Assembly: GCA_002269645.1 (NCBI GenBank)
Contig: NIVC01001312.1
Location: forward strand, 1-64,000
From: Macrostomum lignano
Lineage: Eukaryota
DNA length: 64,000 bases
Direction: 5' to 3'
Shown: piece after piece, positions 31,300-62,897 of the stretch
Position numbering within the stretch: position 1 is the stretch's first letter
Layout: every line of letters begins with the position of its first letter
Program-made: the position numbers and the translations under genes
The notes under the pieces: generated by a model
Told to the model about the DNA's origin: nothing
The model's database searches: none
What the model saw: only the letters and a program-made list of their open reading frames with translations

Positions 31300-32165
<866 letters not shown>

Positions 32166-35019: not shown

Positions 35020-38000
35020 ATGGCGGAAGCAATGGCGATAATCCTAGGGCTCCTGGTTGCTCAGGCCTCCGCTGTAAACCTAAAAGTTGGCGTGATCACG
35101 GAGGCCTGGAACTTGAACAGCTCGCTCATCGACGTCGCCTTCGCCAGACGGGTCAACTACAACTGGAGAGTGCTGCAGGGCCACACACTCTCATATGTGC
35201 ATGTCAATGTGAGCTCGTGCAGCTCACACCAGGCTGTCAGGACTGGTGAGTTGAAGCATTTGCTACGCGACTCAATCGCTGCTCTGCTCAACCTGCTCAA
35301 TCAATGCACACAATTGAAGCATGAATTGCACGAATGCAAGTGTGAGTGCGAGCTGTGAAACTGTGCATGTGTCTGTGTGTCTCGCTCTGCAGTGTGCTCG
35401 GAAAGCGGCCTGTCAGGTCTGATTGGCGTCGGCAGCTGCTCTCTGCTGGATGAAGTGAGCTCACTGAGCAAGTCTCTGCAGCTGCCGCTGATCGCCCTGC
35501 CGACTGGACTGTGCGACTCTGCTCGGCTGAGCAAAGGTAACTGAGATCGATTTCTGACATCTTTCCATCATTTCTATCTGTATTCGGTTTCGACATGAAA
35601 TCACGCGGAAATTGCAGACATGACCATCGTGGGCAGCCACAGCTCAGCAAACATCGTCGCTGCAGCTGCCTCCGTCAGCACTTCGGACTCCGTAGCCCGT
35701 GATGTGGCTATTCTATACGATAAACAGCAGAGTGAGTGATATTTTGACAGTGATACAATAATTAGATGGCGTTTTTGAATGCGCTAGCCTGTGTGACTTA
35801 TTTGAAGTTATTTAGAAACTTAATGTTTAGGATTTTTAAATGCTATGTATTGATTCACGCGTGTGCATCCGAATCGCTTCAGGTACAGCAGTGCTGCAGA
35901 ACCTGCAGTCCAGTCTCTCCTCTGCCGGTGTGAGCAGTCTCACATTCCGAGTGGACGACACTCTCAACGCTTCTGTTACTCCTGACCTGGTGCACCACCT
36001 CAAGCGGCTGGTCAAGAAGAAAGTGTTCAAGCTGCTGCTGTTCGCCTCTCCTCGCAATGCTCTCAGTGTGCTCAGGCTCGCCAGGGAAGCTGCAGTGATG
36101 CAGCAGAACTACTTCTGGCTTGTGCTCGACACCGGACTGTCCAAGGCCGATGTGCTCAGCGTGACGCCGGCGAACGCGAACGTCGCTCTGCTGAGAGGCA
36201 GCGTGTTCACCGAGTGCACAGCAGCAGTGATGGATGTGTTTCCTCAGTGCCAGACGGACTGGCTTCGGGTGAGCGTTTCATGTGTGCTGCTTGATGGCTG
36301 CAGGGATTCATCATGCAGCACCGCACGTGTGCAATGCATGCCACTGTCGCACTCGATCTCGCACTCGATCTCGCACTCGATTGTCGCATTCGCATTTGCA
36401 TTCGACAGACTCTGGACGCTCGCTTCGTAGACGCCGTAGAAGCCATGGCCAAGGCGCTCAACGAATCGCTGCTAGATCCGGGATTCTCTCCCGGCAACGC
36501 CTCGTGTGCACCACTGCGCCACTGGACATCGGGCTCGGCTGTGTTCAACAGACTCATGAGTGTGAGTGAGCTCACTAGCTAGCAAGCATTGACAAGCATT
36601 ACTAGTTTCGAGCTGGTCTCTCCCCAATCCCTACTCGATGTGCAGATTAGCGACTATGACACTCAGCGAGGCCTGATCTCGTTCAACAGCTCGACCAGAC
36701 ACTTCAGCTCGCAACGAGTCGAAGTCGTCGCGTCCTACAATGAGCTGTGGTCGTCTCCGGTCTCGATGCTGAGGTCGGCTCAGTTCAATGTATCGAGCGG
36801 AGCTCTGAGCAAGCTGTTCCGCTACAAGGGAGTCAGTTTGGCATTCCCCAACACCTTCATGGGGTTCAAGAACCAGACCATTGTAGTTTGTACCCCGGAG
36901 GTATGTGCTTTACTTTTTTGTGAAATTTGCAGCCATATTTTGTGCTTTTTAAATTTAATTTACTGTTTGATTTCCGCAGAGTCCTCCAATGACAAATTTT
37001 GAGAAGAGGTTTTCCAACAGTACAGTGATTATTAACGGAATGACTTTTGATCTGCTTAATATTCTCGCTTCAAAGCTTGAGTTCCGGTGAGGCATTGTGT
37101 CTTTTGAGTTATTGGCAGAACTCTGGTTGTATTATGCCAGAATTGGCTAAGTAGAATTGGTAGTTTTCCAATGCAAACGGAGAGACCCAAGCCTATATAA
37201 GAACCCATAACTACCCATTCTGCGCAGGTTCTACACAAAAGACTCCGACGATGGCAACTGGGGTGCTCCAGTTCCGAATCAGCCATATTTTAATGGATGC
37301 GTTGGGGAGTTGCAGCGAGGTGTAAGTAACATTAAAAAATTGTTGTGCGCCTCTTTTTAGGATAACTACAAGTTAGCTTCAAGTTCTGTAGCGCCGACTG
37401 ACATTGAAAATTATCCGAAATTAGATTGAACTTTTTATGGTGACAAATTTTGGTATTATACGAGCGCTGAGCATGGCTCAACGTGCTTCTTCAACATATC
37501 CCACTCTATATATTATCAAAAAATTATTTTTTGGCCCGAGTTTAGAATTTCTGTTGCTTGACACGAACTGAGTAATAAATACATCATTAAACCACTTTAA
37601 AGTTCACTCTCAGGGAGGTTATTGACATAGATTTTTTTGCGGGATTTAACGATACTTTCCCGGACAGATTGCAAGGATTATTGTATGTATCTTCGCCCCC
37701 ACACCCCCATCCCCAACTTCAACCATAGACATACAAGTATGGCTCCGGGATTTATCTGAATACATCCCGCAAAATTGAAGTAGTTTAAATAAGATATTCT
37801 ATGGGTTTGAGGTCGGTATGCAATTAAATCCCGAGAGCCAAAGGTCAAAGGCTCGAGGGATTTAAGTGAAATACCGACCTCAAACCCATAGAATATCTTA
37901 TACTTACCCACTTGTTTGACTTATCTATGGTCGTAAGCGGCTGAGGACGCGTTTATTGGCCAAAATAAATAAAACAAGTGGGGAATAACATATACTATTA

Positions 38001-40907
38001 ATGGGTTTGGCGCTGCTAATGCGAGCTAGTTGCCATAAGATAACTGCAAATGCTAAATAAAAAAATGCAGTCAAGTGTGTGAAGAATAAATACTCCCAAA
38101 TCTACTTTACGCTCGTAGTTAGTCACGATCGCAGCCGGACCATTCACGAGGACTACAACGAGAGACTCAGTGATTGACTACTCAACGCCTCTGTTTCAAG
38201 AGTCGAATGGCATTCTACTGCCCAGGCCTCCTCCAGCGTCGAAAATGTGGAACGTCTATTTGCCTTTTAACTACGACGTTTGGATTTCAGTAATTGTACT
38301 CTTGTTCATCTGCTCGTTTATCACCTGGATTCTAGCGTACTTTTCACCTTTCACTGCCTACAATCTCAAAGAAGAATACGCGATTGCTGACGAAGTCTGG
38401 TTCCAAGAGTACGTTTGGAGCGTCGTTGGAAGCTTCTTACAGCAGGGCCAGGACTTTTATCCCTTTGCAATGTCGCCAAGAACTATTCTGGCATTCTGGT
38501 GGATGTTTACGGTCATTATATATGGACTTACACTGGTAGGTCTTTTTTAGTAACAAGCGCGGACTGTGAAATTTTAGTGATCGTGCCTGAAGCTCTTCAT
38601 ATCTGCATATTTTACTTACTCCTACACAGGAGATTTAACAGCGCATCTGACCGTCACCATCACTGACTATCCGATCAAGACATTGTCGGATCTGGTGTCT
38701 CAAACCGCCATCAAGCCGTACGTTCCAGCTGGCACAAACTTGTACACCCTGTTCAAGGAGTCTAACTCAGGCGTCTACAAGCAGGTTGCGGATGTCATGG
38801 TGGATTTGGGGCCCTACGATTACTGCCCGGATTCCGTGAGTTGCCAGTGGTTGTATTGCCCTTGCAGAGACGTGCGAATGTCAGGATGTGACTCAAATTT
38901 TTACCCACAAAGAGACAGGGGCGCCCACCCAGAGACAGAGAAGTCCACCAAAAGACCAAATATTGAAGCCTCTCATCGTTGCGGCCCCATCCAGATAAAA
39001 TTACTGCATACGTAACTGTTCGACAGTGAATTCAATGTTTATAAGTACGGCATGCTTTTTCATAATGCTCATACCTAGTTTGATTCTGATGATTAGATAA
39101 CATAAAATGCCGCCGTCTACGACCGTCTGCTATTTAGATTGCTTCATATAATTTGAGCTAATAGTATTGAAATATTTAATACCAGTTGAATTTGCGTTTA
39201 TTAGGACATCCAGTATTTTTTCTTGTCTGCGACCCTGTCAGCAAAAGATGGAGCCAGACGAAACAACCTGTTTAGCCTTAATCATCAAACAAAACATTAC
39301 ATGAGTTGGGTATATTTTTCTCGCTGAATGCAGCTCATGTTTCTATTCAGCTTTCCAACTCCCATGTTGTCTGAAGCACTTCAAAGCACTTCATCAAGAC
39401 TTACAAGTCAACTATGAAAATGAACACGAGGGGGGATCGATGATGCGAGAGTGATGCAGGAGTTTTAGGGCGAGAATTCGGCCGTTAAAAACGATAATCA
39501 GGAAGTGGTGCCAGCTCTTTTAAGATGGTTGGGACACCGTTGAGGAAGCTCATCACAGTGGAAGAGCTGCCTCAACAGGACACCGAGCGTGTGCGTCACA
39601 CAGGAGCTCTCAGAATTTGTTGGTCTGTCAACTCGAGCTGTCCATGAAATCTAGACCGCTGAGCACTGGAATGAGTCGCGTTATTGCAAGCGGGTTGCTA
39701 GGGCTGCTCAGCGACACCCAGCATTAAAACAGACTTGGAGCTTGCTGTCAGCTCCTGAATACCTACTGCACTCACAGGGCACGAATGGCAGTCACATTAT
39801 TCCTAGCCTGAATCCAAAAGGCAGAGCAGCGTCTGAAATTGGGTGATGGATATTAGGGTCTGACAAGCAAATAGCAACCGTGTTCTGAGATAGGCAAGAA
39901 AAATCTTGCATATCGAGGAGAAATTTATTATTTGTTACTTTTGAAAGAGTGTGTTTGGAAAAATTTATTAAAAAAATTCCTAGATTGGAAATTCTCTGTG
40001 AATAAATCAGTTTTTTTCTGTTTTCAGGCAGGACCATATAGTATAGCCTTGTATTTTTTCTACTATACACAATTTCAGGTTGTCAGACAAGAAAGGGCCT
40101 GTTTAAACGACTACACGTACCTATTGGCTATAGCCATGAAGAACTGCACACAATATTATCTTGCCGAAGAGACGTTCAACACGGCCACAGTGGCATTCAT
40201 GTATCCCGACGATGCCTACTTCGCTGAGTATTTTGACTTCTAGTGAGTATACCAACAACGCTTATAATCCTATTTGGCTTTTGTTGCATGCTACATGTTC
40301 CAAGGTCCATGGAATTTTGGACGCAAAACCAAGACCTAAGCCTAGCTTGTGTAAAATTTGTCCGCAGTCAACTGTCGTGCTCCAACGTTTTCTGGATACT
40401 ACGTAGAATTTAAAACTTACGAGTAGCAATTGTACCAAGTTAAATATGTTCATCGCTTTATCGAAGCATTTTAGCAAGACCTATGGAATAAAGCTTTGTT
40501 GGTGCAGTAGCAAAACAGGCAAAATAAGCATGCCTGTCATGCATTTTAGAACACTTCAGGAAAAGTAAAACAATAATGCTTTACTATTTCTAGCATTTAT
40601 TGTCAAGCTGTTCATTAACTACGGGCGTCAGTGACTACTCAGCTAAATAACTAATTCATTTTTTATTAGTATGCAGAAGCTGCTGGAGACTGGTCTGATG
40701 CAGCGGCTATTCAAAATCTATTGGTCAAGCGACATCGTCTGCACTGTTGGCAAGTCGACCGAAGCTAACTCCATCAATTTCAAAGGCGTTGAAGGCTGCT
40801 TTATTGTCACTGGCTGCCTTTACGGCGTTGGTTTAATTCTGCTGCTGCTGGAATTGGCCTGGACTAAGCTGGCCAAAAAACAGCCCTTGGATTGTGTCAT
40901 CTACTGA
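35020..40907 (+). CDS. Ionotropic glutamate receptor-family paralog A (ATD-S1-M1/M2/M3-S2-M4), apparent 1-nt deletion at ~38527
   Basis: Signal peptide; ATD exons; AAGPFTRTTTRDSVIDYSTPLF; SFLQQGQDF; GDLTAHLTV; MKNC; C-terminus AKKQPLDCVIY. Hand-spliced exons are otherwise in phase. Confidence 0.9.
39400..39780 (+). pseudogene. Degenerate mariner-type transposase N-terminal relic in an intron of paralog A
   Basis: Broken translation IRKWCQLF*DGWDTVEEAHHSGRAAST...VTQELSEFVGLSTRAVHEI resembles the mariner HTH region (W...FKDGR.SVEDE.RSGRP...ELA..GIS..TV..I); contains stops and frameshifts. Confidence 0.5.
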
Positions 40908-41119: not shown

Positions 41120-41700
41120 CTGTCTCTAGGCGACCGCTGCTGTCTCTAGGCGACCGCTCCTGTCTCTTGGTGACCGCTCTTGTCTCTTGGTGACCACTCC
41201 TGTCTCTTGGTGACCGCTCTTGTCTCTTGGTGACCGCTGTCTTGGTGACCGCTCTTGTCTATTGGTGACCGCTGTCTTTTTTTTTAATTCGAGGCAGGGG
41301 GGTTGTGTGCACCCTGGCGCACTTTAAGCGACATGGGCACACAACCGGCGAGAGGCATTACTGCCCATTCCGCCGACTCCCCTGAGCAGGCATACAAGCG
41401 CGCGGATACGTACGCAGGCACACACTCACACAGGAATGTACAGCGGCCCTAACTTTATATTATCGTTAGGCATGTACACTTCACTGCGCCTTAGGGGGTT
41501 GGCTCTCAAGGCCGTTAATTGCACGAGCAGAGCCAAGCCGAGATTCCAATTCAGCCCCAAATTAATGTGACTGCACTTGGAATCGAGCCTGGGTCGCTGG
41601 CACACCAGAGCAGCTGCGCTACCGCTGGGCTACGGCCCCCCTTGACCGCTGTCTTGGTAACCGCTCCTGTCTCTTGGTGACCACTTCTGTCTCTTGGTAG
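41120..41700. repeat. ~20 bp TCTTGGTGACCGCTCCTGTC repeat, split by the SINE insertion
   Basis: Units on both sides of 41277-41641. Confidence 0.8.
41277..41641 (-). mobile_element. Full-length tRNA-derived SINE family 2 with poly(A) tail and TSD-like flanks
   Basis: Poly-T at 41277-41285; TGACCGCTGTCTT on both flanks; head GGGGCCGTAGCCCAGCGG...GGCTCGATTCCAAG on the minus strand. Confidence 0.8.
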
Positions 41701-43594: not shown

Positions 43595-46500
43595 TCAAAA
43601 TATCACGCAGTCCAGTGGCTGCTTCTTGGCCACTTTGGTCCAGAGCAGCTCCAGCATAAGGATGAGCAGACCGGCAACATAAAACGTCAGAGTGATAATG
43701 CAGCATCCACTGATGGCTTCAAGATTGACCGGTTCGGCATCAGAAATCCGGCTTTTGCTGCACACTGCACCGCTGGACCAATACTTTTGGAACCACCGCT
43801 GGATGAGGCCCGTCGCTTTTAGCTTCTGGAAGCTAGGTTATGGAATAAAAATATTCAGTACAAGCATATTTTAGATAGATAGATATAGATAGATAGATAG
43901 ATAGATAGATAGAACGGTGGCACTCACTGAAAGTTGAACAGATCTGCATACGGCGCGTCATCAGGAAACATGAAAGCAACCGTGCCTGTGTTAAATTGCT
44001 CGGCGGCCATGTAGAACTGGCTGCAGTTTCTCATCGCCAGCGCCAGCAAAGCCGTGTAGTCCGAGATGCAAGCCTGGTCAGGTCTTGGGGGCTTAAAGAA
44101 TGATTGGAATCGGGTATCAAGAGGTAGCATTTTTTAACAATTGATAAAAGCGTTTAATAATGAAAGATACGAACTATGCTTCTAAACGTCTCAAGCACTT
44201 ACCTTCATGGGACAATTTTCGTACGGACTGTAGACGACCATTTTATCGGCGATTTCTTTGTATATGCCCGACTTAGATTCTGTTAGCAGTGTGTACAAAT
44301 TTGTACCGTTTTGCACGTAAAGCTTGATCGACGATTGCGACAGCAAACCGCTTAGGGTGTTTATTTGCTCTTCCGTCTCCGTAGCGGTCAGATATGCAGT
44401 CAGATTGCCTATGAAATGTGTGCAGTAGGAATGATCGCTACGTCTTGAAGCAAGCTTCTTACGTCGCTTCACCCTATTGTGTTGTACTTTCTCGCAGACA
44501 GCCTGTCTGACTACCGCGGCCTCACTTGCGGTTGGGGCGGTGCTCTGAGCCTTCCTTTAGAATGATCTCTCAGAATTAAATGCAACAAAATAAGTTCTTT
44601 GGGCAGAAGGAAACCTACATGAACCTAAGTACGTACGTGTGTATTTTTAGTGAAACATGAATGCCAGTTAAATGTTTATTGTTCCTTTTAACTACGAGTG
44701 TATATGCATTAGACAACTAAATGGATAAAGCAAATATTCTCCTGTCCATTTTTCCGTCCCAGATAAACAAATCAATAGTTTACCAGCGAAACAGCCGTTT
44801 ACAATGACGGTAAAGATCCACCAAAAGGCCAGGCCTACACGAGGCGACATTGCGGAGGGATAAAAGTCTTGGCCCTGCTGCATGAAGCTGCCAATAAAAG
44901 CCCAAAAATATTCTTGTAGCCAAATCTCGTCGCCAATAGCATACTCCAGACCAAGGTTGTAGCCGGTAAATGGTGAGAAATACGCCATCAGCCAGGTAAG
45001 CAGCGCCGATACAAGCAGAGCACCAACAATGGCATACCAAACATATTCAGTGAATGGCGTGAATATATTCCACATTTTGGACTTCCTGCCCGGATTGGGC
45101 ACTAAAACGCCGTTGGATTCTTGGAACAGAGCGGCTGAGAAATCGATCACCGAAGCGCGTCCGGTAGTTTTAGTAAACGGCCCCGCTCCGATGGCGACAA
45201 TCTGTCGGAAGTTTTTGCTGACATTCATTATTTGTAGATTTCTAGACAAAATTCTAACCACTAAAATGTTTAATACTGCGTACAACACAGTGCATATAGA
45301 TGTAAATGAAAAGACAGAATGGAAACCGACAATATTAGTCGATTTCATCAATAGATGCCATACCTGCTTATGCCATCTCCAGAACTACTCCAGAAAGACA
45401 ATTAGAAACACTAATGGGCTGTGCAACCGACAGCAGATGTGCAACCGACAGCTCAGCCGCAGCTATTGCGCAGCTTATCTGAAGGTTGCGCACGGCTGTT
45501 CAGTCCAAGGACTGGGGTAGGGGGAACACACACCCTCAATTATCCAAGCTAATGCTGGTACCCAGTTAACAGCTAGGTGAACTAAAGCAATGCGTAGTTT
45601 ACTGTCTTTTTCAGGGACACAATTGTTCCCAGTGGGTCAAGAATCGAACCCCCGACCTTCCAGTCGTGAGTCCGACACTCTAACCACTAGGCTAAAACCT
45701 CCGCTGGCTCGACCCCACTGGCTACAACCGCCACTGGCTACAGCCCCCACTGGCTACAATCCACACCAGGACGAACACAGAATTTATTTCAGTCGACGCC
45801 ATCACAGTGAACGTCATGTCAATCATAGAACATCTCACTCCTCGTTGAAGCTCTCCGACGCATCCTGTGTAGTACTTCGAGTTCGGTTGGGGTGCACCCC
45901 AGCTTCCATCGTCCGGGTTCTTAGTAACGAAGCTAAAGAGTTAATGAATTTAAGCTGAGACAAACCTTCGGCCACATTAAAAACGAAATAAAAATCTTAA
46001 CATACCGGAAGTCCATCCTATCAGCAAAGTACTCGAGAATATCTAGTGTCATTCCAGTCATCTCAACGGTATTATTAGCATAAATCTTTTTAAAAACAGT
46101 CATTGGGTCGCTCTGAAAGATAGAAATTTTAAAAGCAAAACCAATTTCTCAAAAATTACCCGCAGGAAATTGTAAGACAAATATCGCAAAACTCGATTTA
46201 CCTCAGGAGTACAGGCGACAATGGTCTGGTTCTTGAACCCCATGAAGGTGTTGGGGAATGCCAAGCTGACTCCCTTGTAGCGGAACAGCTTGCTCAGAGC
46301 TCCGCTCGATGCATCGAACTGAGCCGACCTCAGCATCGAGACCGGAGACGACCACAGCTCATTGTAGGACGCAACCACTTCGACTCGTTGCGAGCTGAAG
46401 TGTCTGGTCGAGCTGTTGAACGAGATCAGGCCTCGCTGAGTGTCATAGTCGCTGATCTGCACATCGAGTAGGGATTAGGAAGAGACCAGCTCGAAACTAA

Positions 46501-48051
46501 TAATGCTTGTCAATGCTTGCTAGCTAGTGAGCTCACTCACACTCATGAGTCTGTTGAGCACAGTCGAGCCCGATGTCCAGTGGCGCAGTGGCGCACACGA
46601 GGCGTTGCCGGGAGAGAATCCCGGATCCAGCAGCGAGTCGTTGAGCGCCTTGGCCATGGCTTCTACGGCGTCTACGAAGCGAGCGTCCAGAGTCTGTCGA
46701 ATGCGACGATCGAGTGCGAGATCGAGTGCGACAGTGGCATGCGTTGCACACGTGCGGAGCTGCATGATGAATACCTGCAGCCATCAAGCAGCACACATGA
46801 AACGCTCACCCGAAGCCAGTCCGTCTGGCACTGAGGAAACACATCCATCACTGCTGCTGTGCACTCGGTGAACACGCTGCCTCTCAGCAGAGCGACGTTC
46901 GCGTTCGCCGGCGTCACGCTGAGCACATCGGCCTTGGACAGTCCGGTGTCGAGCACGAGCCAGAAGTAGTTCTGCTGCATCACTGCAGCTTCCCTGGCGA
47001 GCCTGAGCACACTGAGAGCATTGCGAGGAGAGGCGAACAGCAGCAGCTTGAACACTTTCTTCTTGACCAGCCGCTTGAGGTGGTGCACCAGGTCAGGAGT
47101 AACAGAAGCGTTGACAGTGTCGTCCACTCGGAATGTGAGACTGCTCACACCGGCAGAGGAGAGGCTGGACTGCAGGCTCTGCAGCACTGTTGTGCCTACA
47201 GTGATCAAGTATAGACTTTAGTTATGTCTGACTTTTTGAACTTTGATAGAAGAAACATTCGTAAATATACTGAAAATATTGGAGCTCTCTAGGATTTTAC
47301 TTTATTCACAGCACTCACTTTGCAGACCATCGAAGAAAACTGCCACACTGCTAACTATGGAATCTGACGTAAGGACGGTGGCGGCTGCAGCGACGATGTT
47401 TTCCGAGCTGTGGCTGCCCACGATGGTCATGTCTGAAACTTCCGCGTGATTTCATGTCGAAACCGAATACAGATAGAAATGATGGCAAGATGCCAGAAAT
47501 CGATCTCAGTTACCTTTGCTCAGCCGAGCAGAGTCGCACAGTCCAGTCGGCAGGGCGATCAGCGGCAGCTGCAGAGACTTGCTCAGTGAGCTCACTTCAT
47601 CCAGCAGAGAGCAGCTGCCGACGCCAATCAGACCTGATAGGCCGCTCTCCGAGCACACTGCGGAGCGAGACACATAGACACATGCACAGTTTCACAGCTC
47701 GCACTCACACTTGCATTCGTGCAATTCATGCTTCAATTGTGTGCATTGATTGAGCAGGTTGAGCAGACCAGCGATTGAGTCGCGTAGCAAATGCTTCAAC
47801 TCACCAGTCCTGACAGCCTGGTGTGAGCTGCACGAGCTCACATTGACATGCACATATGAGAGTGTGTGGCCCTGCAGCACTCTCCAGTTGTAGTTGACCC
47901 GTCTGGCGAAGGCGACGTCGATGAGCGAGCTGTTCAAGTTCCCGGCCTCCGTAATGATTGCGACTTTCAAGCCTAATGCGCTTGTAGATTCAGTAAGAGT
48001 CCATATCAGGCTGAGGAGATTAAGCAGTTTAGTACTTAAATGCTGCTTCAT
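43595..48051 (-). CDS. Ionotropic glutamate receptor-family paralog B (appears intact)
   Basis: ATG 48051; shared ATD; IGAGPFTKTTGRASVIDFS; SFMQQGQDF; VNGCFAGNLTAYLT; MRNC; C-terminus AKKQPLDCVIF. Confidence 0.9.
45434..45694 (-). mobile_element. CORE-like SINE (copy 3) in an intron of paralog B
   Basis: Homologous to 4265-4505. Confidence 0.6.
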
Positions 48052-50596: not shown

Positions 50597-53500
50597 ATGT
50601 CTTCAATTATTTCAATCATTGTCTGTTCGCTGCTTTTCGGCAGCACTAGAGCCCTGGACCTCAAGATAGGCGTGATCACGGAGGCCGGAAGCTTGAACGG
50701 CTCGCTAATCGACGTCGCCTTCGCCAGACGGGTCAACTACAACTGGAGAGTGCTGCAGGGCCACACACTCTCATATGTGCATGTCAATGTGAGCTCGTGC
50801 AGCTCACACCAGGCTGTCAGGACTGGTGAGTTGAAGCATTTGCTACGCGACTCAATCGCTGCTCTGCTCAACCTGCTCAATCAATGCACACAATTGAAGC
50901 ATGAATTGCACGAATGCAAGTGTGAGTGCGAGCTGTGAGACTGTGCATGTGTCTGTGTGTCTCGCTCCGCAGTGTGCTCGGAAAGCGGCCTGTCAGGTCT
51001 GATTGGCGTCGGCAGCTGCTCTCTGCTGGATGAAGTGAGCTCACTGAGCAAGTCTCTGCAGCTGCCGCTGATCGCCCTGCCGACTGGACTGTGCGACTCT
51101 GCTCGGCTGAGCAAAGGTAACTGAGATCGATTTCTGACATCTTTCCATCATTTCTATCTGTATTCGGTTTCGACATGAAAACACGCGGAAGTTGCAGACA
51201 TGACCATCGTGGGCAGCCACAGCTCGGAAAACATCGTCGCTGCAGCCGCCACCGTCCTTACGTCAGATTCCATAGTTAGCAGTGTGGCAGTTTTCTTCGA
51301 TGGTCTGCAAAGTGAGTGCTGTGAATACAGTAAAATCCTAGATAGCTTCAATATTTTCAGTATATTTACGGATGTTTCTTCTATCAAAGTTCAAAAAGTC
51401 AGACATAACTAAAGTCTATACTTGATCACTGTAGGCACAACAGTGCTGCAGAACCTGCAGTCCAGTCTCTCCTCTGCCGGTGTGAGCAGTCTCACATTCC
51501 GAGTGGACGACTCTGTCAACGCTTCTGTTACTCCTGACCTGGTGCACCACCTCAAGCGGCTGGTCAAGAAGAAAGTGTTCAAGCTGCTGCTGTTCGCCTC
51601 TCCTCGCAATGCTCTCAGTGTGCTCAGGCTCGCCAGGGAAGCTGCAGTGATGCAGCAGAACTACTTCTGGCTTGTGCTCGACACCGGACTGTCCAAGGCC
51701 GATGTGCTCAGCGTGACGCCGGCGAACGCGAACGTCGCTCTGCTGAGAGGCAGCGTGTTCACCGAGTGCACAGCAGCAGTGATGGATGTTTTTCCTCAGT
51801 GCCAGACGGACTGGCTTCGGGTGAGCGCTTGATGTGTGCTGCTTGATGGCTGCAGGGATTCATCATGCAGCACCGCACGTGTGCAACGCATGCCACTGTC
51901 GCACTCGATCTCGCACTCGATCTCGCATTTGCATTCGACAGACTCTGGACGCTCGCTTCGTAGACGCCGTAGAAGCCATGGCCAAGGCGCTCAATGACTC
52001 GCTGTTGGATCCGGGATTCTCTCCCGGAAACGCCTCGTGTGCGCCACTGCGCCACTGGATATCAGGCTCGACTGTGCTCAACAGACTCATGAGTGTGAGT
52101 GAGCTCACTAGCTAGCAAGCATTGACAAGCATTATTAGTTTCGAGCTGGTCTCTTCCCAATCCTACTCGATGTGCAGATTAGCGACTATGACACTCAGCG
52201 AGGCCTGATCTCGTTCAACAGCTCGACCAGACACTTCAGCTCGCAACGAGTCGAAGTGGTCGCGTCCTACAATGAGCTGTGGTCGTCTCCGGTCTCGATG
52301 CTGAGATCGGCTCAGTTCGATGCATCGAGCGGAGCTTTGAGCAAGCAGTTCCGCTACAAGGGAGTCAGTTTGGCATTCCCGAACACCTTCATGGGGTTCA
52401 AGAACCAGACCATTGTAGTCTGTGCTCCGAAAGTAAATATTTTATGTTTTGAGCTATTTTAACGATTGATTTAACGTCTTAAATTCTTTAGGACGGTTTC
52501 TAGCTAACATTTCTTGAATTACTGTGTTTTAGACTAACCCATTGACGATGTACTCAGCGTCATACCCTAATAACACTGTTATCATTACTGGTTATACGTC
52601 GAACGTTCTCAGCACTTTAGCTTCAAAAATGGAATTTAGGTTAGTTTATACTATTTTTGTTTTTATAATGTTGCCGCTCTTGACGAACGCATGTCGCTAG
52701 AATCTAAAGTTATTGTGAAATCTCAATTACAGGTACATTGTAAAAGAACCAGACGATGGAAGTTTCGGCAGTCCGACACCAGACTCCAGCTATTTTACCG
52801 GTTGCGTTGGCGAGCTGCAGAAAGGCGTAAGTCGCTATATTACTGGGTTGTCTATTGTGCATTGAAGTCAAACATTTTATGTTCCATTTTGCTCGAATCG
52901 ACGCACAGATGGCTACCCTGGCTGCCGGACCATTTACCAAAACAACAACCCGCGACGATGTTGTTGACTTCTCCACTGCACTCTTCGAAGAGTCCAATGT
53001 TGTGCTCATTCCGAGACCCCCACGGGAGTCGAAGATTTGGAATGTTTTCAAGTCTTTTACTGTTGAGACTTGGCTTTTGATTGTTGCGTTTGTGTTTTTG
53101 TCGTCGTTTGCCACTTGGACTTTAGCATTCTTCTCACCGTTTACGGCTTACAACCTGAAGGTTGACTACTCCGTTGCCGACGAGATCTGGCTGCAGGAGT
53201 ACATCTGGAGTGCGGTAGGAAGTTTCATGCAGCAAGGCCAGGACTTTTACCCGTTCTCAATGTCACCAAGAATAACCATGGCGTTTTGGTGGATGTTCAC
53301 CGTGGTTATTTATGCGTCGTACACAGGTGAGATCAAGCTTGCAATTTTGTTTTTAATAAAACAAAAATTATAGCTCACATTAGCGTTGACCATTGCAGGC
53401 GACCTTACCGCCCATCTCACGGTAACCGTAACGGATGTCCCTATCAAAACGCTGTCGGATCTTGTTTCCCAATCTTATATTAAGCCCTACGTGGAATCCG

Positions 53501-54490
53501 GATCAAATCTGGAAACTCTTATGCTGGAAGCAAAATCAGGCATTTACAAGCAAATTGCTGAGAGGATGGTTATTATTAATGAAGTATGTACCACAGTAAG
53601 TACATGTAACTTGAAATTTTGCGTCTCAGTTTTTGTAAGCTTGTTTTCTATAATCTCAAGCAACAGCATTTTGACTCTAAAATCTTACGATCTCTTAAGA
53701 CGTGGAAGCCGGACCAGGCCTGCTTAGGGGACTACACGCCCCGGCTTGCCTCTGCAATGAGGAACTGCTCGCTGTACTACCTGGCGGAGGAGCATTTTAA
53801 CACGGCCACCATTGCGTTTGTTTATCCTGACGATGCTTTTTACGCATCACTGATGGACTTCTAGTAAGTTATTAGGTATTCTAAGAGGGATGCACGTTTT
53901 GGAAAAGTAGCAACACAAGAAAATTTCTGAAGCAGCGCCTCCTTTTGGCGTGTTTAAAACGCAAGCTGTATATGAAATCACTGAAAATAGTTTCTGGACA
54001 ATATATAGACAGTCGTAGCTTCAAGTTATTGTTACTAGTAAATATTATATTACTACTGAGAATAAGAGAGATGTAGTTTTGGGGAATTGCAGCTTTACTA
54101 CGAGTATTAAACGGAGTTTCCTTCAGCCACATGCTCTGCTAGCTCCTACTACTTTTATCTATTTATATAATAAATATCACTAAATAAAAGGCGCATTCAG
54201 CGACTAGAAGCAGCCTACTGAGCAAAATAAGAATCCAATTTATAACTTCCAGTATGCAGAAGATGCTGGAAACTGGCTTGACGCAGAGATTCTTCGCAAA
54301 CGTCTGGACAAACTACGACGCCTGCTCGTCGGGTCGCTCGACCGAGGCCGATTCTGTCAACTTGGAGGGCGCCGGCGGTTGCTTCATCATTGCACTCAGC
54401 CTGTACGGTCTGGGACTGCTGATCCTGCTGGTCGAGCTCTGCTGGACCAAGCTGGCGAAGAAGCAGCCGCTGGACTGTCGAATCTATTGA
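50597..54490 (+). CDS. Ionotropic glutamate receptor-family paralog C (appears intact)
   Basis: Signal peptide; shared ATD; LAAGPFTKTTTRDDVVDFS; SFMQQGQDF; YASYTGDLTAHLTV; MRNC; C-terminus AKKQPLDCRIY. Confidence 0.92.
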
Positions 54491-56165: not shown

Positions 56166-56244
56166 GCTTCATCAGTCAGCACTGAACCCCGCAGGCAGCA
56201 GCAGCATTCGCACAGTGATGGCTTGAACGCATCGGCGGTGCACC

Positions 56245-56550: not shown

Positions 56551-57344
56551 ACTAGGGGCCAAAAGAGAATGGAATAAAAATTATTTAATAAACTACATGT
56601 AGCTCCTTGACATCTCAGTCTTAACATCTCAGAAATTCTCCCGCAAGCCTTGATGACACTGTGAAAATGGATGCAGTGCTACTGACTTAGTCACAAAATA
56701 GAAATTTTAACACATGTTTTCTTTAAAGTCACTACAAAGTTAAATTCCTCCTACAAGAAGTGTTCCGCTCAAAGGACAAAAGAGGCTCAGAAAAAGTGTG
56801 GGACAAAGATTAGGAACGAACCATGTCACACATTTTGCTAAATTTTTTTACTGTAAGACTGTGGAAGTATTGAACGTTCTTTTAGAATAGTTATTCGATT
56901 AGAGCCTCATCTTTAAACTTTGTTGAGTTTGTGGTTTTAGGACAGTGTGTGGTAGGCCACTGCAAGCAGTGAGCTTCGCTCTTCATTAAGGCCATTGGAG
57001 ACAAACGGTAGTAGCACTGTGTTCGTGTGCATGTTTACTGAGGTCATGGTGACACTAGGCCGACAGGAAAGAATGTCTCAATACTCCACACGGTTAAAGA
57101 GAAAAAAAATCAATGCATAGCAACGTTAATTGGGCTCAGGTTTTTTAAAAACAAATCAAAAGTTTCCGATAATGCGGAGCCACAAACCGTTAAATCCATC
57201 GGAAGAAAACTGACCCATTGAAAATTAAAACTTAATTTGAGACTGGACGAAGCAAGAGACTTTAATTGTCTTCTATGCAGAAATACGAGTAAACTAATTA
57301 ACTAAGGTTACACATTTAATTTAATAGCACAAGTTGTAGCTGTG

Positions 57345-57765
<421 letters not shown>

Positions 57766-58098: not shown

Positions 58099-61000
58099 AT
58101 GTACAGGTATATTTCACTCATTTTAAGCTCATTGCTATTTGGCTCCAGTGCGCTGGACTTCAAGATAGGCGTGATCACGGAGGCCGGGAACTTGAACAGC
58201 TCGCTCATCGACGTCGCCTTCGCCAGACGGGTCAACTACAACTGGAGAGTGCTGCAGGGCCACACACTCTCATATGTGCATGTCAATGTGAGCTCGTGCA
58301 GCTCACACCAGGCTGTCAGGACTGGTGAGTTGAAGCATTTGCTACGCGACTCAATCGCTGCTCTGCTCAACCTGCTCAATCAATGCACACAATTGAAGCA
58401 TGAATTGCACGAATGCAAGTGTGAGTGCGAGCTGTGAGACTGTGCATGTGTCTGTGTGTCTCGCTCCGCAGTGTGCTCGGAGAGCGGCCTGTCAGGTCTG
58501 ATTGGCGTCGGCAGCTGCTCTCTGCTGGATGAAGTGAGCTCACTGAGCAAGTCTCTGCAGCTGCCGCTGATCGCCCTGCCGACTGGACTGTGCGACTCTG
58601 CTCGGCTGAGCAAAGGTAACAGATCGACGTATGGCATTTTTGCATTTCTAATTATCTATCTTTATCCGGTTTCGACATGAAATCACGCGGAAATTGCAGA
58701 CATGACCATCGTTGGCAGCCACAGCTCGGAAAACATCGTCGGTGCAGCTGCTTCAATCGTTAACTCGGATTTCATAGTTAGCAGTGTGGGAATTTTCTAC
58801 GATGGTCTCCAGAGTGAGTGATGTGGTTAAAGGAAAATGTGACGTTTGCATTTTTGTTTTATAACTAGACATATCTTATTTAATCAAAACACAATTAGTA
58901 CTGGTAAATGTACTCCCATCATGATTCAAGTCTGCATTTGGTCACTGCAGGCACAACTGTGGTGCAGAACCTGCAGTCCAGCCTCTCCTCTGTCGGTGTG
59001 AGTAGTCTCACATTCCGAGTGGACGACACTGTCAACGCTTCTGTTACTCCTGACCTGGTGCACCACCTCAAGCGGCTGGTCAAGAAGAAAGTGTTCAAGC
59101 TGCTGCTGTTCGCCTCTCCTCGCAATGCTCTCAGTGTGCTCAGGCTCGCCAGGGAAGCTGCAGTGATGCAGCAGAACTACTTCTGGCTCGTGCTCGACAC
59201 CGGACTGTCCAAGGCCGATGTGCTCAGCGTGACGCCGACGAACGCGAACGTCGCTCTGCTGAGAGGCAGCGTGTTCACCGAGTGCACAGCAGCAGTGATG
59301 GATGTGTTTCCTCAGTGCCAGACGGACTGGCTTCGGGTGAGCGTTTCATGTGTGCTGCTTGATGGCTGCAGGGATTCATCATGCAGCTCCGCACGTGTGC
59401 AATGCATGCCTCTGTCGCACTCGATCTCGCACTCGATCGTCGCATTTGCATTCGACAGACTCTGGACGCTCGCTTCGTAGACGCCGTAGAAGCCATGGCC
59501 AAGGCGCTCAACGACTCGCTGCTGGATCCGGGATTCTCTCCCGGCAACGCCTCGTGTGCGCCACTGCGCCACTGGACATCGGGCTCGACTGTGTTCAACA
59601 GACTCATGAGTGTGAGTGAGCTCACTAGCTAGCAAGCATTGACAAGCATTATTAGTTTCGAGCTGGTCTCTTCCCAATCCTACTCGATGTGCAGATCAGC
59701 GACTATGACACTCAGCGAGGCCTGATCTCGTTCAACAGCTCGACCAGACACTTCAGCTCGCAACGAGTCGAAGTGGTCGCGTCCTACAATGAGCTGTGGT
59801 CGTCTCCGGTCTCGATGCTGAGGTCAGCTCAGTTCGATGCATTGAGCGGAGCTCTGAGCAAGCTGTTCCGCTACAAGGGAGTCAGCTTGGCATTCCCCAA
59901 CACCTTCATGGGGTTCAAGAACCAGACTATTATTATTTGTGCTCCTGAGGTATGTATGGCATGAGAACTGATTTGAATGTGTTTGAACTTTCTAACTACA
60001 AATTACATTCATCTCTGCATTGACTACTTCAGAGTGCTCCAATGACTGTGTTTTAGCAGAAGTTTGCAAACAAGACTGTTGTAATGAGTGGAATGGTTTT
60101 AGATTTGCTTCAGGTTTTATCAAAAAAGCTTGAGTTCAAGTAAGTTTGTGTTGACCTCGTTTGCCGTTTATATTGAATCGTACAAGTAGGAGTCCAAAGG
60201 CATCAGCATTGATTTTTAGGTTCATTACAAAGGACTCCCACGATGGAAACTGGGGCTCTCCTCAAAGCGACTCAGTGTATTTCACTGGATGTGTTGGGGA
60301 GCTCCAACGAGGCGTAAGTAGAATGATGTTTTTATTAAAGGCTAATCGATTCTAAGAAGCTTTTCGCAACGTTTTTAGGAAGCAGCAGTTGCAGCGGGTC
60401 CTTTCACAAAGACTACCATTCGTGACTCTGTCGTGGACTTTTCAGCACCACTTTTCGAAGAGTCCAATGCAATTCTAATCCCGAGACCGCCGCCAGAGTC
60501 AAAACTCTGGAACGTGTTTGCACCGTTTTCAATTGGAATCTGGATGATGATAGTTGCCGCCATGCTGGTGGCAGCATTTGTCACTTGGATAATAGCCTAC
60601 TTTTCGCCGTTCACGGCTTACACTTTGAATCTGGATTACGCAATCGCTGACGAGATCTGGCTGCAGGAGTACCTGTGGAGCATCATTGGCAGCTTTATGC
60701 AGCAAGGCCAGGACTTTTATCCATTCTGCATGTCCTCGAGAACTGTTCTGGCCTTCTGGTGGTTGTTTACAGTCATAATCTATGCTTCGTATACAGGTGA
60801 GACCTGGGGTTCCATAGTATTAGCTCAGTATTAGTATTGGTTTTTGCATGCTAAGTGGGACATTTTTCAAGCAATCTGAGACTGAATAGCAAAAACACTA
60901 TTGTCTATGGCCACCCCTCGCTGCAGCCCAGCTTTTTGGGCGCGCCTTGCAAGTAAATTGAGACATTTTTTCAAGCTAAGTGAGAACCATATTGAAAACA

Positions 61001-62897
61001 AAGGGGTGGTTTTACGAAATTACAAAATGATGTACTGTCGGAAACTATATATTTAGAAAAGGATACGCAGGAACACAACCAAACAAGCGGTACAAAAATT
61101 GTTGATAATGTTATAAGCGTTCAAATAAAGGGTTGCATGTTGATACACTGAGCAAACTTTCGAGTGCAGTGGAGCTCCCAGCCTGCGATCTTGTGCGGAG
61201 CAATGACATGCAGCGATTCTCTTCCAAGCCGATCCATCAGCATGTATCGCCAATCATCTCGTGTCATGCCTGGTGGGCAAACGTTTTCCTCAGCCACGAT
61301 TGCGGGCTCTACAAGGCGACGCTTAATCTCATTCTTAAGAGCGCTGTGCGCCATCTCCACGGGATTCAAAAACGGCGAGTACGCCGGGAAAATTTGCAGA
61401 CGAATGAGATCCTCAAACTGCTCAGGTATCTCAATCCCTTGGTGAAAATTTGGACCATCGAAAATGAGACTTTGTTTTCAATATGGTTCTCACTAAGCTT
61501 TAAAAAATTTCTCACTTTGCTTGCAAGGCGATCCCAAAAAGCTGGGCTGCAGCGAGGGGTGGCCATAGACAATAGTGTTTTTGCTATTCAGTCTCAGATT
61601 GCTTGAAAAATGTCTCACTTAGCATGCAAAAACCAATATTAGTCCATGGCTCTACACGTGTACTTGCTACACTGTAAATGGAAGTTGTAGAATATGTTAC
61701 AGTAAGCAGACTCTCTATAGCTTTTAATTTTTGCTTCCAGGTGATCTGACTGCGCACCTGACTGTAACGGTGACAGACTATCCAATCAAGACCCTTCAGG
61801 ACCTGGTGTCGCAGACAGCTATTAAGCCCTACGTTTCTGTTGGAACTAATCTGCACACTTTGCTGACTCAGTCGAACTCTGGAATTTACAAACAGATGGC
61901 CGACATGATGGTTGAGATTGGTCCGTACGAAGAATGCCCATCGTTTGTAAGTCCACTAAACGCTTGTTTATTAAATGCCAGAATATTTCCCAGCTTTTTT
62001 CAAATCACGAGTACACTGAATGATTTGATGCGTATTTTTTGTAACTTGGATTTTTCCTCATGTGTTGACAGCCTCGGAAAGCTGATGAAGGCTGCATGAA
62101 CGATTATTCATTTCTTCTGGCAATCGCAATGAAAAATTGTTCTGAATACTATGTGGCCGATGAGCTGTTCAACACGGCGACTTTGGCTTTCATGTTTCCG
62201 GAGGACGCATACTATGCGGATTCGTTTAATTTTCAGTGAGCAATTTTACTTAAAATTTATGACACGGGCTACTTTTCCTGCAGTACTGCTTCAAAATGCG
62301 CAAGATTTATTTTACTGAAGTAAAAACTTTCTATCAGAAAGGTGATGCAAACTTAGACACTGGAGTAGAGATCTAGACTTCATGTAAAGTGTTTTTCAGT
62401 GTTCTAGATCTGGCTTGAATTCCTAGTAGGAGAATGGTTTGATAAAATTGATATTTGGTTTTAAACTAAAAAACAATAGCTATTTGCAGTAGGTTATGAG
62501 CACCCTTACGTTGACATAAAATCCTAGTATTTATATATCCCTTTAATCTGCTAGAGCCCAAAGCAGAGACCTAGATGAGATGTCTTGAAGTTCCTAAGAT
62601 TAAAATAGCCTGACCTGCAGTTGGTTTGTCCACAGCTAAATTGGTTCAACGTAATTCAGATTGCAGAAGCTGCACGAGTCGGGTCAAATACAGCGCTGGT
62701 TCGAGTTCTATTGGTCCAGCGACACAGTTTGCACCGTTGGAAAATCAGCCGAAGCCGATGCTATTAACCTGGAAGGCGTAGGTGGCTGCTTCATCATCGC
62801 CCTGAGTCTGTTCGTGGCTGGACTTCTCATTTTGACGATTGAACTGATCTGGACTAATCTGGCCAAAAAGCAACCCCTTGACTGCCTGATTTACTGA
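58099..62897 (+). CDS. Ionotropic glutamate receptor-family paralog D, in-frame TAG at 60054-60056
   Basis: Signal peptide; shared ATD; VAAGPFTKTTIRDSVVDFS; SFMQQGQDF; YASYTGDLTAHLTV; MKNC; C-terminus AKKQPLDCLIY. Confidence 0.88.
60837..61636 (-). mobile_element. Non-autonomous IS630/Tc1/mariner element, ~165 bp TIRs, TA target duplication, retaining the C-terminal transposase fragment
   Basis: Long inverted repeats starting TTGGTTTTTGCATGCTAAG; TA on both flanks; minus-strand frame LIFDGPNFH...FPAYSPFLNPVEMAHSALKNEIKRR (DDE_3-type motif, D-x33-E by hand count). Lies in the intron after the M3 exon of paralog D. Confidence 0.85.

Follow-up and report, generated by a model that had tools for sequence, protein, structure and literature searches.

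Near-identical N-terminal domains on old, diverged iGluR paralogs of Macrostomum lignano: a likely case of region-restricted interlocus gene conversion

In the window analysed in this work (the whole stretch of 64,000 nucleotides from Macrostomum lignano), four 12-exon iGluR genes are present (order and strands A+, B-, C+, D+), and the ATD block of these genes is very likely to have been homogenised by long-running, region-restricted interlocus gene conversion between old tandem paralogs. We infer both the recombination mechanism itself and its long-running character, rather than a single event, from the observed sequence pattern, the age contrast between the parts of these genes, the mosaicism of the sites and the paralogs elsewhere in the genome which do not participate. 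The genes are as follows.

Gene A, 35020..40907, + strand, 12-exon iGluR (ATD + S1 + M1-M3 + S2 + M4), frame broken in exon 9; exons (hand-built GT-AG model) 35020-35245, 35393-35536, 35618-35731, 35883-36268, 36409-36561, 36646-36900, 36980-37086, 37228-37321, 38119-38535, 38630-38835, 40079-40242, 40670-40907
Gene B, 43595..48051, - strand, intact iGluR, 841 aa; exons 48051-47805, 47657-47514, 47432-47319, 47195-46810, 46693-46541, 46456-46202, 46112-46006, 45932-45839, 45201-44784, 44408-44203, 44091-43928, 43832-43595
Gene C, 50597..54490, + strand, intact iGluR, 832 aa; exons 50597-50825, 50973-51116, 51198-51311, 51435-51820, 51942-52094, 52178-52432, 52533-52639, 52733-52826, 52909-53326, 53399-53595, 53700-53863, 54253-54490
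Gene D, 58099..62897, + strand, 12-exon iGluR, exon 7 carrying an in-frame TAG; exons 58099-58324, 58472-58615, 58700-58813, 58951-59336, 59459-59611, 59695-59949, 60033-60139, 60220-60313, 60379-60796, 61741-61946, 62072-62235, 62660-62897

Relative to gene B, A is arranged tail-to-tail and C head-to-head. A-D have all 11 intron positions and phases, as well as the exon lengths, in common, and in an outlying paralog (L001) the exon sizes from exon 5 onward are the same or differ by a few nucleotides. Due to this shared exon-intron layout, A-D are to be regarded as whole-gene duplicates and not as assembled modules. Intact reading frames in this assembly are limited to B and C, and the lesions in the other two genes are listed below.

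Gene A 1-nt deletion, 38519..38541, + strand, exon 9, M3 motif (TATGG^ACTTACACTG), seen in the alignment of the exon 9 3' end and its translation; the exon is 417 nt versus 418 in B, C and D
Gene D in-frame TAG stop, 60054..60056, + strand, exon 7 (SAPMTVF*QK)

It is possible that an alternative donor GT at 38540 might rescue the frame of gene A, giving ...IIYGLTLVGDLTAHL, and the TTTTAG at the stop in gene D could serve as an in-frame alternative acceptor, skipping 8 codons.

By their predicted proteins, the members of this cluster are four old tandem paralogs of the ATD-containing kainate/AMPA-like iGluR type. The Pfam matches of gene C are ANF_receptor (PF01094, LIVBP/ANF_receptor-type; residues 45-357, E 2.4e-14, 53.6 bits, the cut-off being 25.4), Lig_chan-Glu_bd and Lig_chan, with a bipartite S1/S2 LBD around the channel (PF10613, residues 420-530, E 1.5e-15; PF00060, residues 546-802, E 1e-26). 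Its best PDB match is GluK2, to which it aligns over the full length, ATD included, although the relation in sequence is distant (phmmer E 3e-38). As in GluK2 and GluA2, the domain order is ATD, S1, M1, pore loop, M3, S2, M4, and the pore carries QQG. Alignment to GluK2 and among A-D places the motif GPFT[KR]TxxR, with the S1 Arg and Thr that contact the ligand, in all four genes, and an acidic S2 residue is likewise present in each of them, as Asp (C[LIM]xDY[TS]) instead of Glu; in GluA2 numbering these alpha-amino-acid contacts are R485, T480 and E705. The M3 motif, canonically SYTANLAAF, reads SYTGDLTAHL in C and D and CFAGNLTAYL in B (that of A is disrupted by the 1-nt deletion), and it appears to be a recognisable but non-canonical variant. 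The cluster differs from GluK2/GluA2 also in its very short C-terminal tail, which ends KKQPLDCxI[YF], and in being a lineage-specific tandem expansion. Lineage-specific tandem expansions of iGluR-derived genes are also seen in the variant ionotropic receptors (IRs) of invertebrates, which are chemosensory relatives of iGluRs. However, in most IRs the ATD is missing and the glutamate-binding residues are gone, whereas the ATD is retained in all four cluster genes, and their LBDs are not IR-like, because the canonical alpha-amino-acid-binding Arg, Thr and Asp are kept.

The original prediction described a near-identical ATD block, introns included, in all four genes, and such a block is indeed found by exact string matches, self-BLAST and MAFFT. 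According to the latter two, it extends over ~1.8 kb (A 35089-36885, B 47961-46217, C 50669-52417, D 58168-59934), and an intron-1 string is exact in all four copies (35246+, 47804-, 50826+, 58325+), where 0 matches are expected by chance. Some details require correction. The start was placed at GGCGTGATCACGGAGGCC, which matches exactly in A, C and D (35089, 50669 and 58168), but in copy B five of its first nine bases differ and the homology begins at ~47955-47961. The block was said to run to the end of the FKNQTI exon; it reaches that exon, but homogeneity ceases 15-17 nt upstream of the exon 6 donor (exon ends 36900/46202/52432/59949). Further, the block shared by all four genes is not one unit but two tracts with an island between them.

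Homogenised tract 1, A 35089-35640 (+), B 47961-47410 (-), C 50669-51220, D 58168-58722, identity 95.8-98.4%
Divergent island, A 35641-35880 (+), B 47409-47198 (-), C 51221-51432, D 58723-58948, between tracts 1 and 2
Homogenised tract 2, A 35881-36885 (+), B 47197-46217 (-), C 51433-52417, D 58949-59934, identity 96.9-98.1%

Tract 1 holds the mature N-terminus in exon 1, intron 1, exon 2, intron 2 and the first 23 nt of exon 3, and tract 2 holds exon 4, intron 4, exon 5, intron 5 and exon 6 as far as ...AACCAGACCATTGT; in both, many 100-nt windows are 100% identical. Introns 1, 2, 4 and 5 are 95-100% identical among the copies, except for intron 2 of D (84-86%), and their lengths are conserved (introns 1 and 5 within 1 nt, intron 2 within 3 nt), with intron 4 varying by 24 nt at a short repeat. 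Both outer boundaries are intra-exonic, the 5' one lying in exon 1 directly after the signal peptide, at the mature N-terminus, and the 3' one at the ATD/S1 junction (gene C residue ~421; the Pfam Lig_chan-Glu_bd (S1) match begins at residue 420). Beyond the block, the predicted divergence of S1/M1-M4/S2 (exons 7-12, 56-65% aa and 55-80% nt identity) and of the downstream introns (introns 6-11, 65-1243 nt, unalignable) was confirmed. The signal peptides had been called unrelated, and this holds for A and B, but between C and D a relationship is recognisable (SLLFGS.ALD[LF]KI).

In gene A the island comprises 240 nt, viz. the 3' 91 nt of exon 3 (its 3' two-thirds) and intron 3. Its identity is 98% between B and C and 55-71% in the remaining pairs, and three versions of it occur within the cluster (A; B=C; D), which with genes E-H included become an A/G type, a B/C/H type and a D/E type. 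In the island, dS is 0 between B and C, 0.36 when D is compared with B/C and 0.87 when A is compared with the others. Genes B and C are the same across the island, yet in the tracts on either side they form one of the most dissimilar pairs, and their run of 40 identical polymorphic sites was matched in 0 of 2000 permutations. A run-length (GENECONV-style) test, an analysis which the original prediction had proposed, was significant for B-C only, weakly so for B-D and C-D, and not significant for the other pairs.

The nucleotide comparison, which covers four copies from one assembly, reveals a marked contrast in age. Similar synonymous divergence of ATD and LBD had been named beforehand as evidence against the original prediction; the values found are strongly different, dS (NG86) being 0.025-0.089 in the tracts (tract 1 0.025-0.083, tract 2 0.027-0.089) versus saturation (pS 0.75-0.84) in exons 7-12 and the signal peptides. 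For the pair B-C the synonymous contrast between tract and outside has a Fisher P of ~1e-69. The LBD/TM part of A-D, with dN 0.24-0.35 and saturated dS, looks like that of old paralogs under purifying selection and not like a hypervariable module.

Based on protein models, at least eight genes genome-wide carry the shared ATD, which is 92-98% identical among A-H. In contrast, P0010 and P0009/P0012 have ATDs that match it at only 55-57% identity, although in the LBD/TM part these proteins are 53-62% identical to A-D, compared with 56-65% among A-D. In the classical test for concerted evolution, paralogs group by species in the tract and by ortholog outside it; as a within-genome proxy for this grouping, the normal ATD divergence of P0010 and P0009 appears consistent with such evolution. 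The shared ATD type has almost no detectable relatives outside Macrostomum lignano, and since HMMER, run exhaustively against 1.84 billion representatives, yielded only 31 matches at E<=1e-3, this ATD is not intrinsically slow.

The informative sites in the tracts back all three four-taxon partitions (7/3/1), with 4 minority-pattern sites where parallel hits would be expected to give 0.25 (P=1.4e-4), and the private differences are clustered. The tracts are also richer in GC, both at third codon positions (GC3 0.72-0.77 versus 0.55-0.58 in the island and 0.53-0.59 downstream) and in introns (0.49 versus 0.32-0.35 and 0.34-0.41). The private substitutions in this block of 55.5% GC are AT-biased (39 S>W versus 15 W>S), which by our own arithmetic implies a mutational equilibrium near 32% GC, and hence a GC-biased force holding the tracts up. 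The gBGC argument is only suggestive, because the non-participating control paralog L001 has part of the same contrast (ATD GC3 slightly higher, 0.68 vs 0.63).

If interlocus gene conversion is responsible, then the family would have been duplicated and its promoters, signal peptides, S1-M1-M3-S2-M4 exons and introns 6-11 would have diverged in the ordinary manner, for long enough to saturate synonymous sites, with the mature-ATD segment being repeatedly homogenised by non-reciprocal homologous recombination in direct and inverted orientation. Conversion tracts would begin and end only where the copies remain nearly identical, so they would halt on one side where the signal-peptide codons have diverged and on the other shortly before intron 6. 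The island would have partly escaped, its three versions themselves being swapped between genes, and further genes elsewhere in the genome would participate, at least eight in total. A mechanical cause, namely that homology has been lost in the flanks, could also account for the boundaries without selection for co-assembly; that selection for a uniform ATD and/or against LBD conversion holds them in place is speculative. However, the 3' boundaries of the four copies coincide to within a few nucleotides. Such agreement is not predicted by simple neutral variation in tract length, and it may point to selection or a single founding event.

A rival reading is one recent copy-and-paste event or burst of events, by exon-block shuffling or transduplication, which placed a single ATD cassette before pre-existing, different LBD/channel genes with no ongoing exchange. 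The common 3' boundary is in its favour, as are the roughly star-like relations of the four copies in the tracts, where differences are mostly private, but we consider it improbable, as the boundaries are in-frame inside exons 1, 3 and 6 and not intronic. Further, the island dS of 0.36-0.87 versus 0.03-0.09 in its flanks would call for at least two tracts per gene, at the same places in at least four genes; informative sites conflict, the non-participating paralogs already own an ATD with the same exon structure, and the raised GC of the tracts speaks for exchange over a long period. At the block ends 35089 and 36885, which are in-frame coding sequence, no terminal inverted or direct repeats or target-site duplications were found, which speaks against a transposon-carried fragment (Pack-type/Helitron capture). 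Between the two mechanisms offered originally, exon-block shuffling is not supported, in view of these boundaries (outer and island), which fall within or across exons, the exon structure of the non-sharing paralogs and the missing transposon signature, whereas repeated gene conversion is supported by the silent-site and intron identity, the mosaic sites, the GC enrichment and the ordinary ATD divergence of non-participating paralogs.

It is less probable still that paralog reads were collapsed or cross-polished, or ATD-LBD junctions mis-joined, during assembly. The assemblies of M. lignano are highly redundant and rich in repeats, over half the genome being repetitive and 180 Mb lying in duplicated blocks >=95% identical (PMC5730564), and the 1-nt deletion in gene A is typical of long-read error. 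However, each copy has 14-21 private variants/indels and a distinct island version, frames and splice sites are continuous over both boundaries in all four genes, and cross-polishing presupposes copies that are already highly similar. The UniProt models, which may derive from the window's own assembly, repeat the gene-specific variant combinations and the C-then-D order (P0001, P0013, P0019) and the exons of gene B, with its continuity from signal peptide to ATD to S1 (P0004, P0019); residues 13-303 of P0001 equal gene C residues 1-291 (100%), and P0013 equals gene D residues 590-834 (99.6%). Lastly, extreme purifying selection on the ATD alone, without recombination, would fit the very low ATD dN (0.004-0.019) and the tract dN/dS of 0.1-0.5, but this highly implausible reading is effectively refuted, as protein-level constraint cannot account for near-identity in introns 1, 2, 4 and 5, synonymous sites are conserved like replacement sites, and the same ATD type is only 55-57% identical in P0010 and P0009 and has hardly any detectable relatives in other species.

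Gene conversion itself is well known, and the cluster adds a new case to a process already known in evolution, although we found no report of gene conversion homogenising this receptor domain. In the clustered protocadherin variable exons of vertebrates, ectodomain-specific homogenisation is described (Noonan et al. 2004, in PMC3966226). From that account, these are likewise tandem neuronal surface-receptor paralogs in which conversion evens out a single extracellular domain and leaves the remainder diverse, and trees of the homogenised part have very short branches. However, they belong to another protein family, the homogenised part is a portion of one large exon, whereas here it is an N-terminal LIVBP-type domain of six exons with their introns, and their truly constant region comes from shared exons via splicing. 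In RHD/RHCE and similar two-locus cases, conversion is limited by selection (Innan 2003, via PMC3966226); as outlined there, most of the gene is homogenised and a defined segment stays diverged, resembling the exon 3/intron 3 island, but two genes and a small escaping segment are involved, whereas in this cluster the larger gene half (the whole LBD and channel) escapes and at least eight genes participate. The resulting "constant plus variable" protein repertoire is similar to that of the Pcdh, UGT1A and Ig/TCR clusters, where a single set of constant exons is shared via splicing or rearrangement. In contrast, each gene here has its own six ATD exons and splice sites, probably kept alike by recombination, and a constant/variable exon cluster of the Pcdh/UGT1A type is excluded for A-D.

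In AMPA/kainate receptors the ATD drives subunit dimerisation and limits which subunits assemble, and of all iGluR domains it normally evolves fastest between lineages. It is conceivable, though doubtful, that selection keeps the ATD uniform as a common assembly or partner-binding module, with at least eight subunits co-assembling combinatorially, the three island versions acting as a specificity patch that sorts assembly classes, and gene conversion maintaining a "constant region" without shared exons. The original reading of constant assembly and variable sensing, as a chemosensory system of freely co-assembling subunits, seems somewhat tempered by the lesions in A and D, the canonical LBD residues and the purifying selection on the LBD/TM part. 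If the homogeneity is merely mechanical, the cluster is still a good textbook example of gene conversion, and no more. It offers a clean, quantifiable instance of domain-precise concerted evolution, with a more than 10-fold dS contrast at single-exon resolution, and lends itself to studies on the formation of conversion boundaries and escape islands. With at least eight subunits carrying a 92-98% identical ATD on LBD/channel parts which are 53-65% identical, it also constitutes a natural experiment, in a flatworm used as a transgenic model, on whether ATD identity suffices for promiscuous heteromerisation.

The models of the four ionotropic glutamate receptor (iGluR) genes were constructed manually, guided by reading-frame segments, matches to homologs and GT-AG sites.

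Gene A: 35020-40907, + strand
Gene B: 43595-48051, - strand
Gene C: 50597-54490, + strand
Gene D: 58099-62897, + strand

Each gene consists of 12 exons with phases that are identical throughout, and the exon lengths differ among the four genes only in the signal-peptide exon, in exon 9 (gene A) and in exon 10 (gene C). The reading frame is intact in B (841 aa) and in C (832 aa). Gene C is matched by the Pfam families ANF_receptor, Lig_chan-Glu_bd and Lig_chan, and its closest solved structure, in a full-length alignment, is GluK2; further, all four genes retain the S1 Arg and Thr and, at the alpha-amino-binding position, an S2 Asp, and their pore sequence is QQG. Based on these characteristics, A-D appear to be ordinary-looking kainate/AMPA-like subunits containing an amino-terminal domain (ATD, exons 1-6), and an IR-like identity was ruled out, as both the ATD domains and the core ligand-contacting residues are retained. 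The core ligand-contacting residues do not differ among the four genes. Differences are seen at one S2 position and at the lid position, which by our own residue mapping corresponds to GluA2 Y450; gene C has Tyr there and the other three genes have Met. All members of the family, A-D and the related UniProt models P0010 and P0014 among them, terminate about 12 residues past M4 in a conserved motif, KKQPLDC[VRL]I[YF] (e.g. 40875-40904 and 62865-62894), with the variants KRHPLDCVVY and NKDPLQCVLF; it is kept even in the distant P0014 and may be a trafficking or scaffold-binding signal.

According to the original prediction, the four genes share a near-identical N-terminal module, introns included. 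Both of the sequence strings anchoring this module are found at the positions given for them, which is not expected by chance, and self-BLAST bore out a near-identical block of about 1.8 kb in four copies, with no fifth copy found elsewhere in the window. In a sliding-window identity check run on the four-way alignment, identity, about 0.3 in the background, climbs at A 35089 to 0.95-1.00 in the space of some 20 nt, and past A 36885 it drops back to background, again in about 20 nt. The block is composed of two tracts separated by a divergent island.

Segments of the four genes and their divergence (dS, pS and dN are pairwise Nei-Gojobori estimates among A-D)
Tract 1: A 35089-35640, + strand; 95.8-98.4% identical; dS 0.025-0.083; dN 0.004-0.019 (range for both tracts)
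Tract 2: A 35881-36885, + strand; 96.9-98.1% identical; dS 0.027-0.089; dN 0.004-0.019 (range for both tracts)
Island: 240 nt between the tracts (last 91 nt of exon 3 plus intron 3); identity 98% for B-C, about 71% for D vs B/C, 55-60% for A vs all others; dS 0 (B-C), 0.36 (D vs B/C), 0.87 (A vs rest); dN 0 (B-C), 0.14-0.29 (other pairs)
Exons 7-12: pS 0.75-0.84, saturated; dN 0.24-0.35
Signal peptides: saturated except C-D (dS about 1.1); dN 0.52-0.94

Uniform near-identity hence describes the two tracts but not the island, where B and C are the only pair that is alike. Similarly, introns 1, 2, 4 and 5 are near-identical (95-100%), whereas intron 3, lying in the island, is not, and intron 2 of D, in which private changes are clustered, is only 84-86% identical to the others. 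The lengths of introns 1 and 5 agree within 1 nt among the copies and those of intron 2 within 3 nt, while the 24-nt length spread of the otherwise near-identical intron 4 is caused by a short tandem repeat (CGCACTCGATCT-like; A 36358-36400 and its equivalents in B, C and D) differing in copy number, the intron of A exceeding the other copies by 18-24 nt. Downstream of the block, introns 6-11 (65-1243 nt) are unrelated, as had been proposed, and no alignment of them is possible. The signal peptides were also described as unrelated, which is correct for most pairs but not for C and D, where similarity reaches about 60 nt farther upstream of the 5' edge.

If the tracts were identical due to constraint on the protein, then the introns and silent sites should not be identical as well; because they are, this explanation was rejected, and the common ancestor of the tracts must be far more recent than that of the remainder of the same genes. 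The ligand-binding/channel part (LBD/TM, exons 7-12), in turn, shows old divergence under purifying selection and no hypervariability. It will also be incorrect to interpret the ATD as an intrinsically slow domain. An exhaustive HMMER search with the ATD against 1.84 billion representative proteins returned 31 hits at E<=1e-3. Six of them reach E<=1e-30, namely five M. lignano models and P0024. Further, two paralogs lack the shared block, viz. P0010 (contig NIVC01000845.1, adjoining an Unc5-like gene) and P0009/P0012; their LBD/TM parts are as distant from those of A-D (53-62% identity) as the latter are from each other (56-65%), yet their ATDs reach only 55-57% identity with the shared one. 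From exon 5 on, the exon sizes of P0010 are the same or nearly the same as in A-D. These paralogs indicate that the ancestral gene already had the ATD and this exon structure, and that divergence in this family normally proceeds at similar rates in the ATD and in the channel, the ATD of one subset of genes having been kept uniform.

Several observations point to exchange between the copies and not to a single founding event. Differences inside the tracts are mostly private to single copies, and the 11 informative tract sites back all three possible groupings (AC|BD 7, AD|BC 3, AB|CD 1), the four minority-pattern sites comparing with about 0.25 expected from parallel mutation at the private-change rates (P=1.4e-4). 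Genes B and C are the same across 40 consecutive polymorphic sites of the island (0/2000 permutations), although in the tracts on either side they rank with the most divergent pairs. In a GENECONV-style longest-run permutation test, which is uninformative for most pairs because polymorphic sites in the tracts are few, only the pairs B-C (0/2000), B-D (40/2000) and C-D (29/2000) stand out. Private changes are also clustered (ten in 34 nt of D intron 2, five in 70 nt of C exon 5), as would follow from the copying of short patches from paralogs located outside the window. The tracts have a GC3 of 0.72-0.77 and an intron GC of 0.49, the island has 0.55-0.58 and (intron 3) 0.32-0.35, and the downstream part has 0.53-0.59 and 0.34-0.41; the private substitutions are AT-biased (39 S>W vs 15 W>S, block GC 55.5%), giving by our arithmetic a mutational equilibrium of about 32% GC, close to the GC content of the introns that are not homogenised. 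This contrast fits long-acting GC-biased gene conversion but is suggestive only, as GC3 of the control paralog (the genomic locus of P0010) is also slightly higher in its ATD (0.68 vs 0.63). Based on the silent sites, introns, conflicting sites and outlying paralogs, the explanation of the homogenised ATD block by gene conversion, which had been proposed earlier, is well supported and probably correct.

The 5' edge of the block lies within exon 1, where the mature protein starts, and the 3' edge within exon 6, 15-17 nt ahead of the donor, at about residue 421 of C; near this edge, the Pfam S1 domain starts at residue 420 of C and ATD-less GluA1 constructs align from residue 418. The homogenised segment is the mature ATD plus linker, and it is set by the domain and not by exons. 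Exon-block shuffling, offered in the original prediction beside gene conversion, is ruled out in its intron-mediated form, because both outer edges are at domain limits inside exons rather than in introns. A transposon origin was rejected, since neither terminal repeats nor target-site duplications were found at the block ends. With gene conversion as the process, the coincidence of edges and domain borders could result from selection, either against conversion of the LBD or for a uniform ATD. It could equally result from mechanics: divergence is unhindered in the signal-peptide codons and in intron 6, and tracts cannot extend through exons 7 and 8, which are only 107 and 94 nt long and are flanked by unrelated introns.

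The wider family was compared at the protein level from fragmentary or chimeric gene models, the P0010 locus being the one outlying paralog locus for which genomic DNA beyond the window was used. In these models the same ATD is carried by at least four further signal peptides (P0005, P0006/P0020a, P0020b and P0002/P0007) and is joined to two more LBD/TM types (P0021 and P0008), one extra set being another tandem pair, fused in model P0020; these models show that the ATD-sharing subset exceeds four genes. The island versions also recur on other genes: P0007 has the A type, P0005 the B/C type and P0006 a D-like type. The neighbor-joining tree of the LBD/TM part is star-like (bootstrap <=55%) and gives no topology to set against the ATD, and an AlphaFold2 model of the gene C ATD, from an 8-sequence family alignment, was unusable (mean pLDDT 34, pTM 0.22).

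The shared block, in rough translation, matched only Macrostomum lignano proteins. Gene B agrees exon by exon with models P0004 and P0019, P0001 is a 100% match to residues 1-291 of C and 11-124 of D, and the C-terminal third of D corresponds to P0013 at 99.6%; from these matches, the window is nuclear DNA of the free-living flatworm M. lignano, whose assemblies are repeat-rich and partly redundant (PMC5730564). Public gene models here are chimeric or fragmented (P0001 is a fusion of C and D, P0020 of two further tandem genes), exon 3 is read in the wrong frame in P0004, and due to this, family counts built on such models would be unreliable. Transcripts of the read-through or polycistronic kind, common in M. 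lignano (PMC5730564), might underlie the fusions. Gene A carries a 1-nt deletion within the M3 motif in exon 9 (38519-38541), which could be an assembly error, and gene D a TAG stop as codon 8 of exon 7 (60054-60056). Bypass would be conceivable in principle in both cases, by a weak donor GT at 38540, 4 nt downstream, in A, and in D by the TTTTAG acceptor ending at 60056 that the TAG itself makes.

Elsewhere in the window there are minus-strand exons of an adenylyl/guanylyl cyclase gene (2230-2604 and 18719-19672), one encoding a Guanylate_cyc catalytic domain (E 2.6e-17) and the other an AC_N transmembrane region (E 4e-7, just under the Pfam cut-off), and a plus-strand exon (about 28450-28830) with a Ras/Rab-like small GTPase core (WDTAGQERF...; Pfam Ras, E 3.8e-18), directly followed by a 25-nt minisatellite (28964-30652; 1.7 kb, 98% identical). 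A 317-aa open reading frame at 25101-26054 (+) gave no Pfam match. Long micro- and minisatellite arrays, e.g. (TGTC)n, (TCTA)n and (GTTA)n, are unusually dense (period 4 to about 120 nt, up to 268 copies), several of them sitting in the iGluR intergenic spacers.

Micro-/minisatellite arrays in the window
7622-8020, 8421-9129, 10106-11078, 12051-12863, 13539-13988
14713-15166, 15493-15973, 16597-17194, 17859-18638, 26623-27691
28964-30652, 31302-32177, 55590-56163, 56270-56552, 57344-57765

Two dispersed short-repeat families (5335-5585, 24176-24520 and 41300-41638; 4262-4509, 21540-21747 and 45433-45698), of about 250-350 nt and 70-88% identity, with one copy in the A-B spacer and one in B intron 8, are probably non-autonomous mobile elements. 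The segments 4262-4509 and 21540-21747 were rejected as further iGluR exons, their self-BLAST partner, 45433-45698, being the repeat in B intron 8.

Among iGluR domains the ATD usually shows the lowest conservation, and the inversion of this pattern noted originally is upheld here. The inverted pattern was not found in a literature search for iGluR ATD gene conversion or concerted evolution and for M. lignano or flatworm iGluR families. For tandem receptor genes there is ample documentation of gene conversion homogenising a single domain, and the iGluR locus resembles both the clustered protocadherin variable exons, where one ectodomain is homogenised by conversion, and RHD/RHCE, where conversion occurs with an escaping exon (PMC3966226). 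It appears to work like these cases in another family. It differs from shared-constant-exon clusters of the Pcdh/UGT1A type, as each iGluR gene has its own ATD exons. In AMPA and kainate receptors the ATDs drive dimer formation and subfamily-restricted assembly, and due to this role it is a reasonable hypothesis that identical ATDs would confer compatible assembly. Caution is called for, because genes A and D are both broken in the assembly, the LBD/TM divergence is old rather than hypervariable, and all four share their core ligand-contacting residues. The chemosensory constant/variable repertoire initially envisaged remains an unsupported hypothesis. The iGluR cluster adds a new and unusually clean case to a class of evolutionary phenomena already known, and its interest, which is moderate, would be higher if the uniformity of the ATD proves to be selected for co-assembly.
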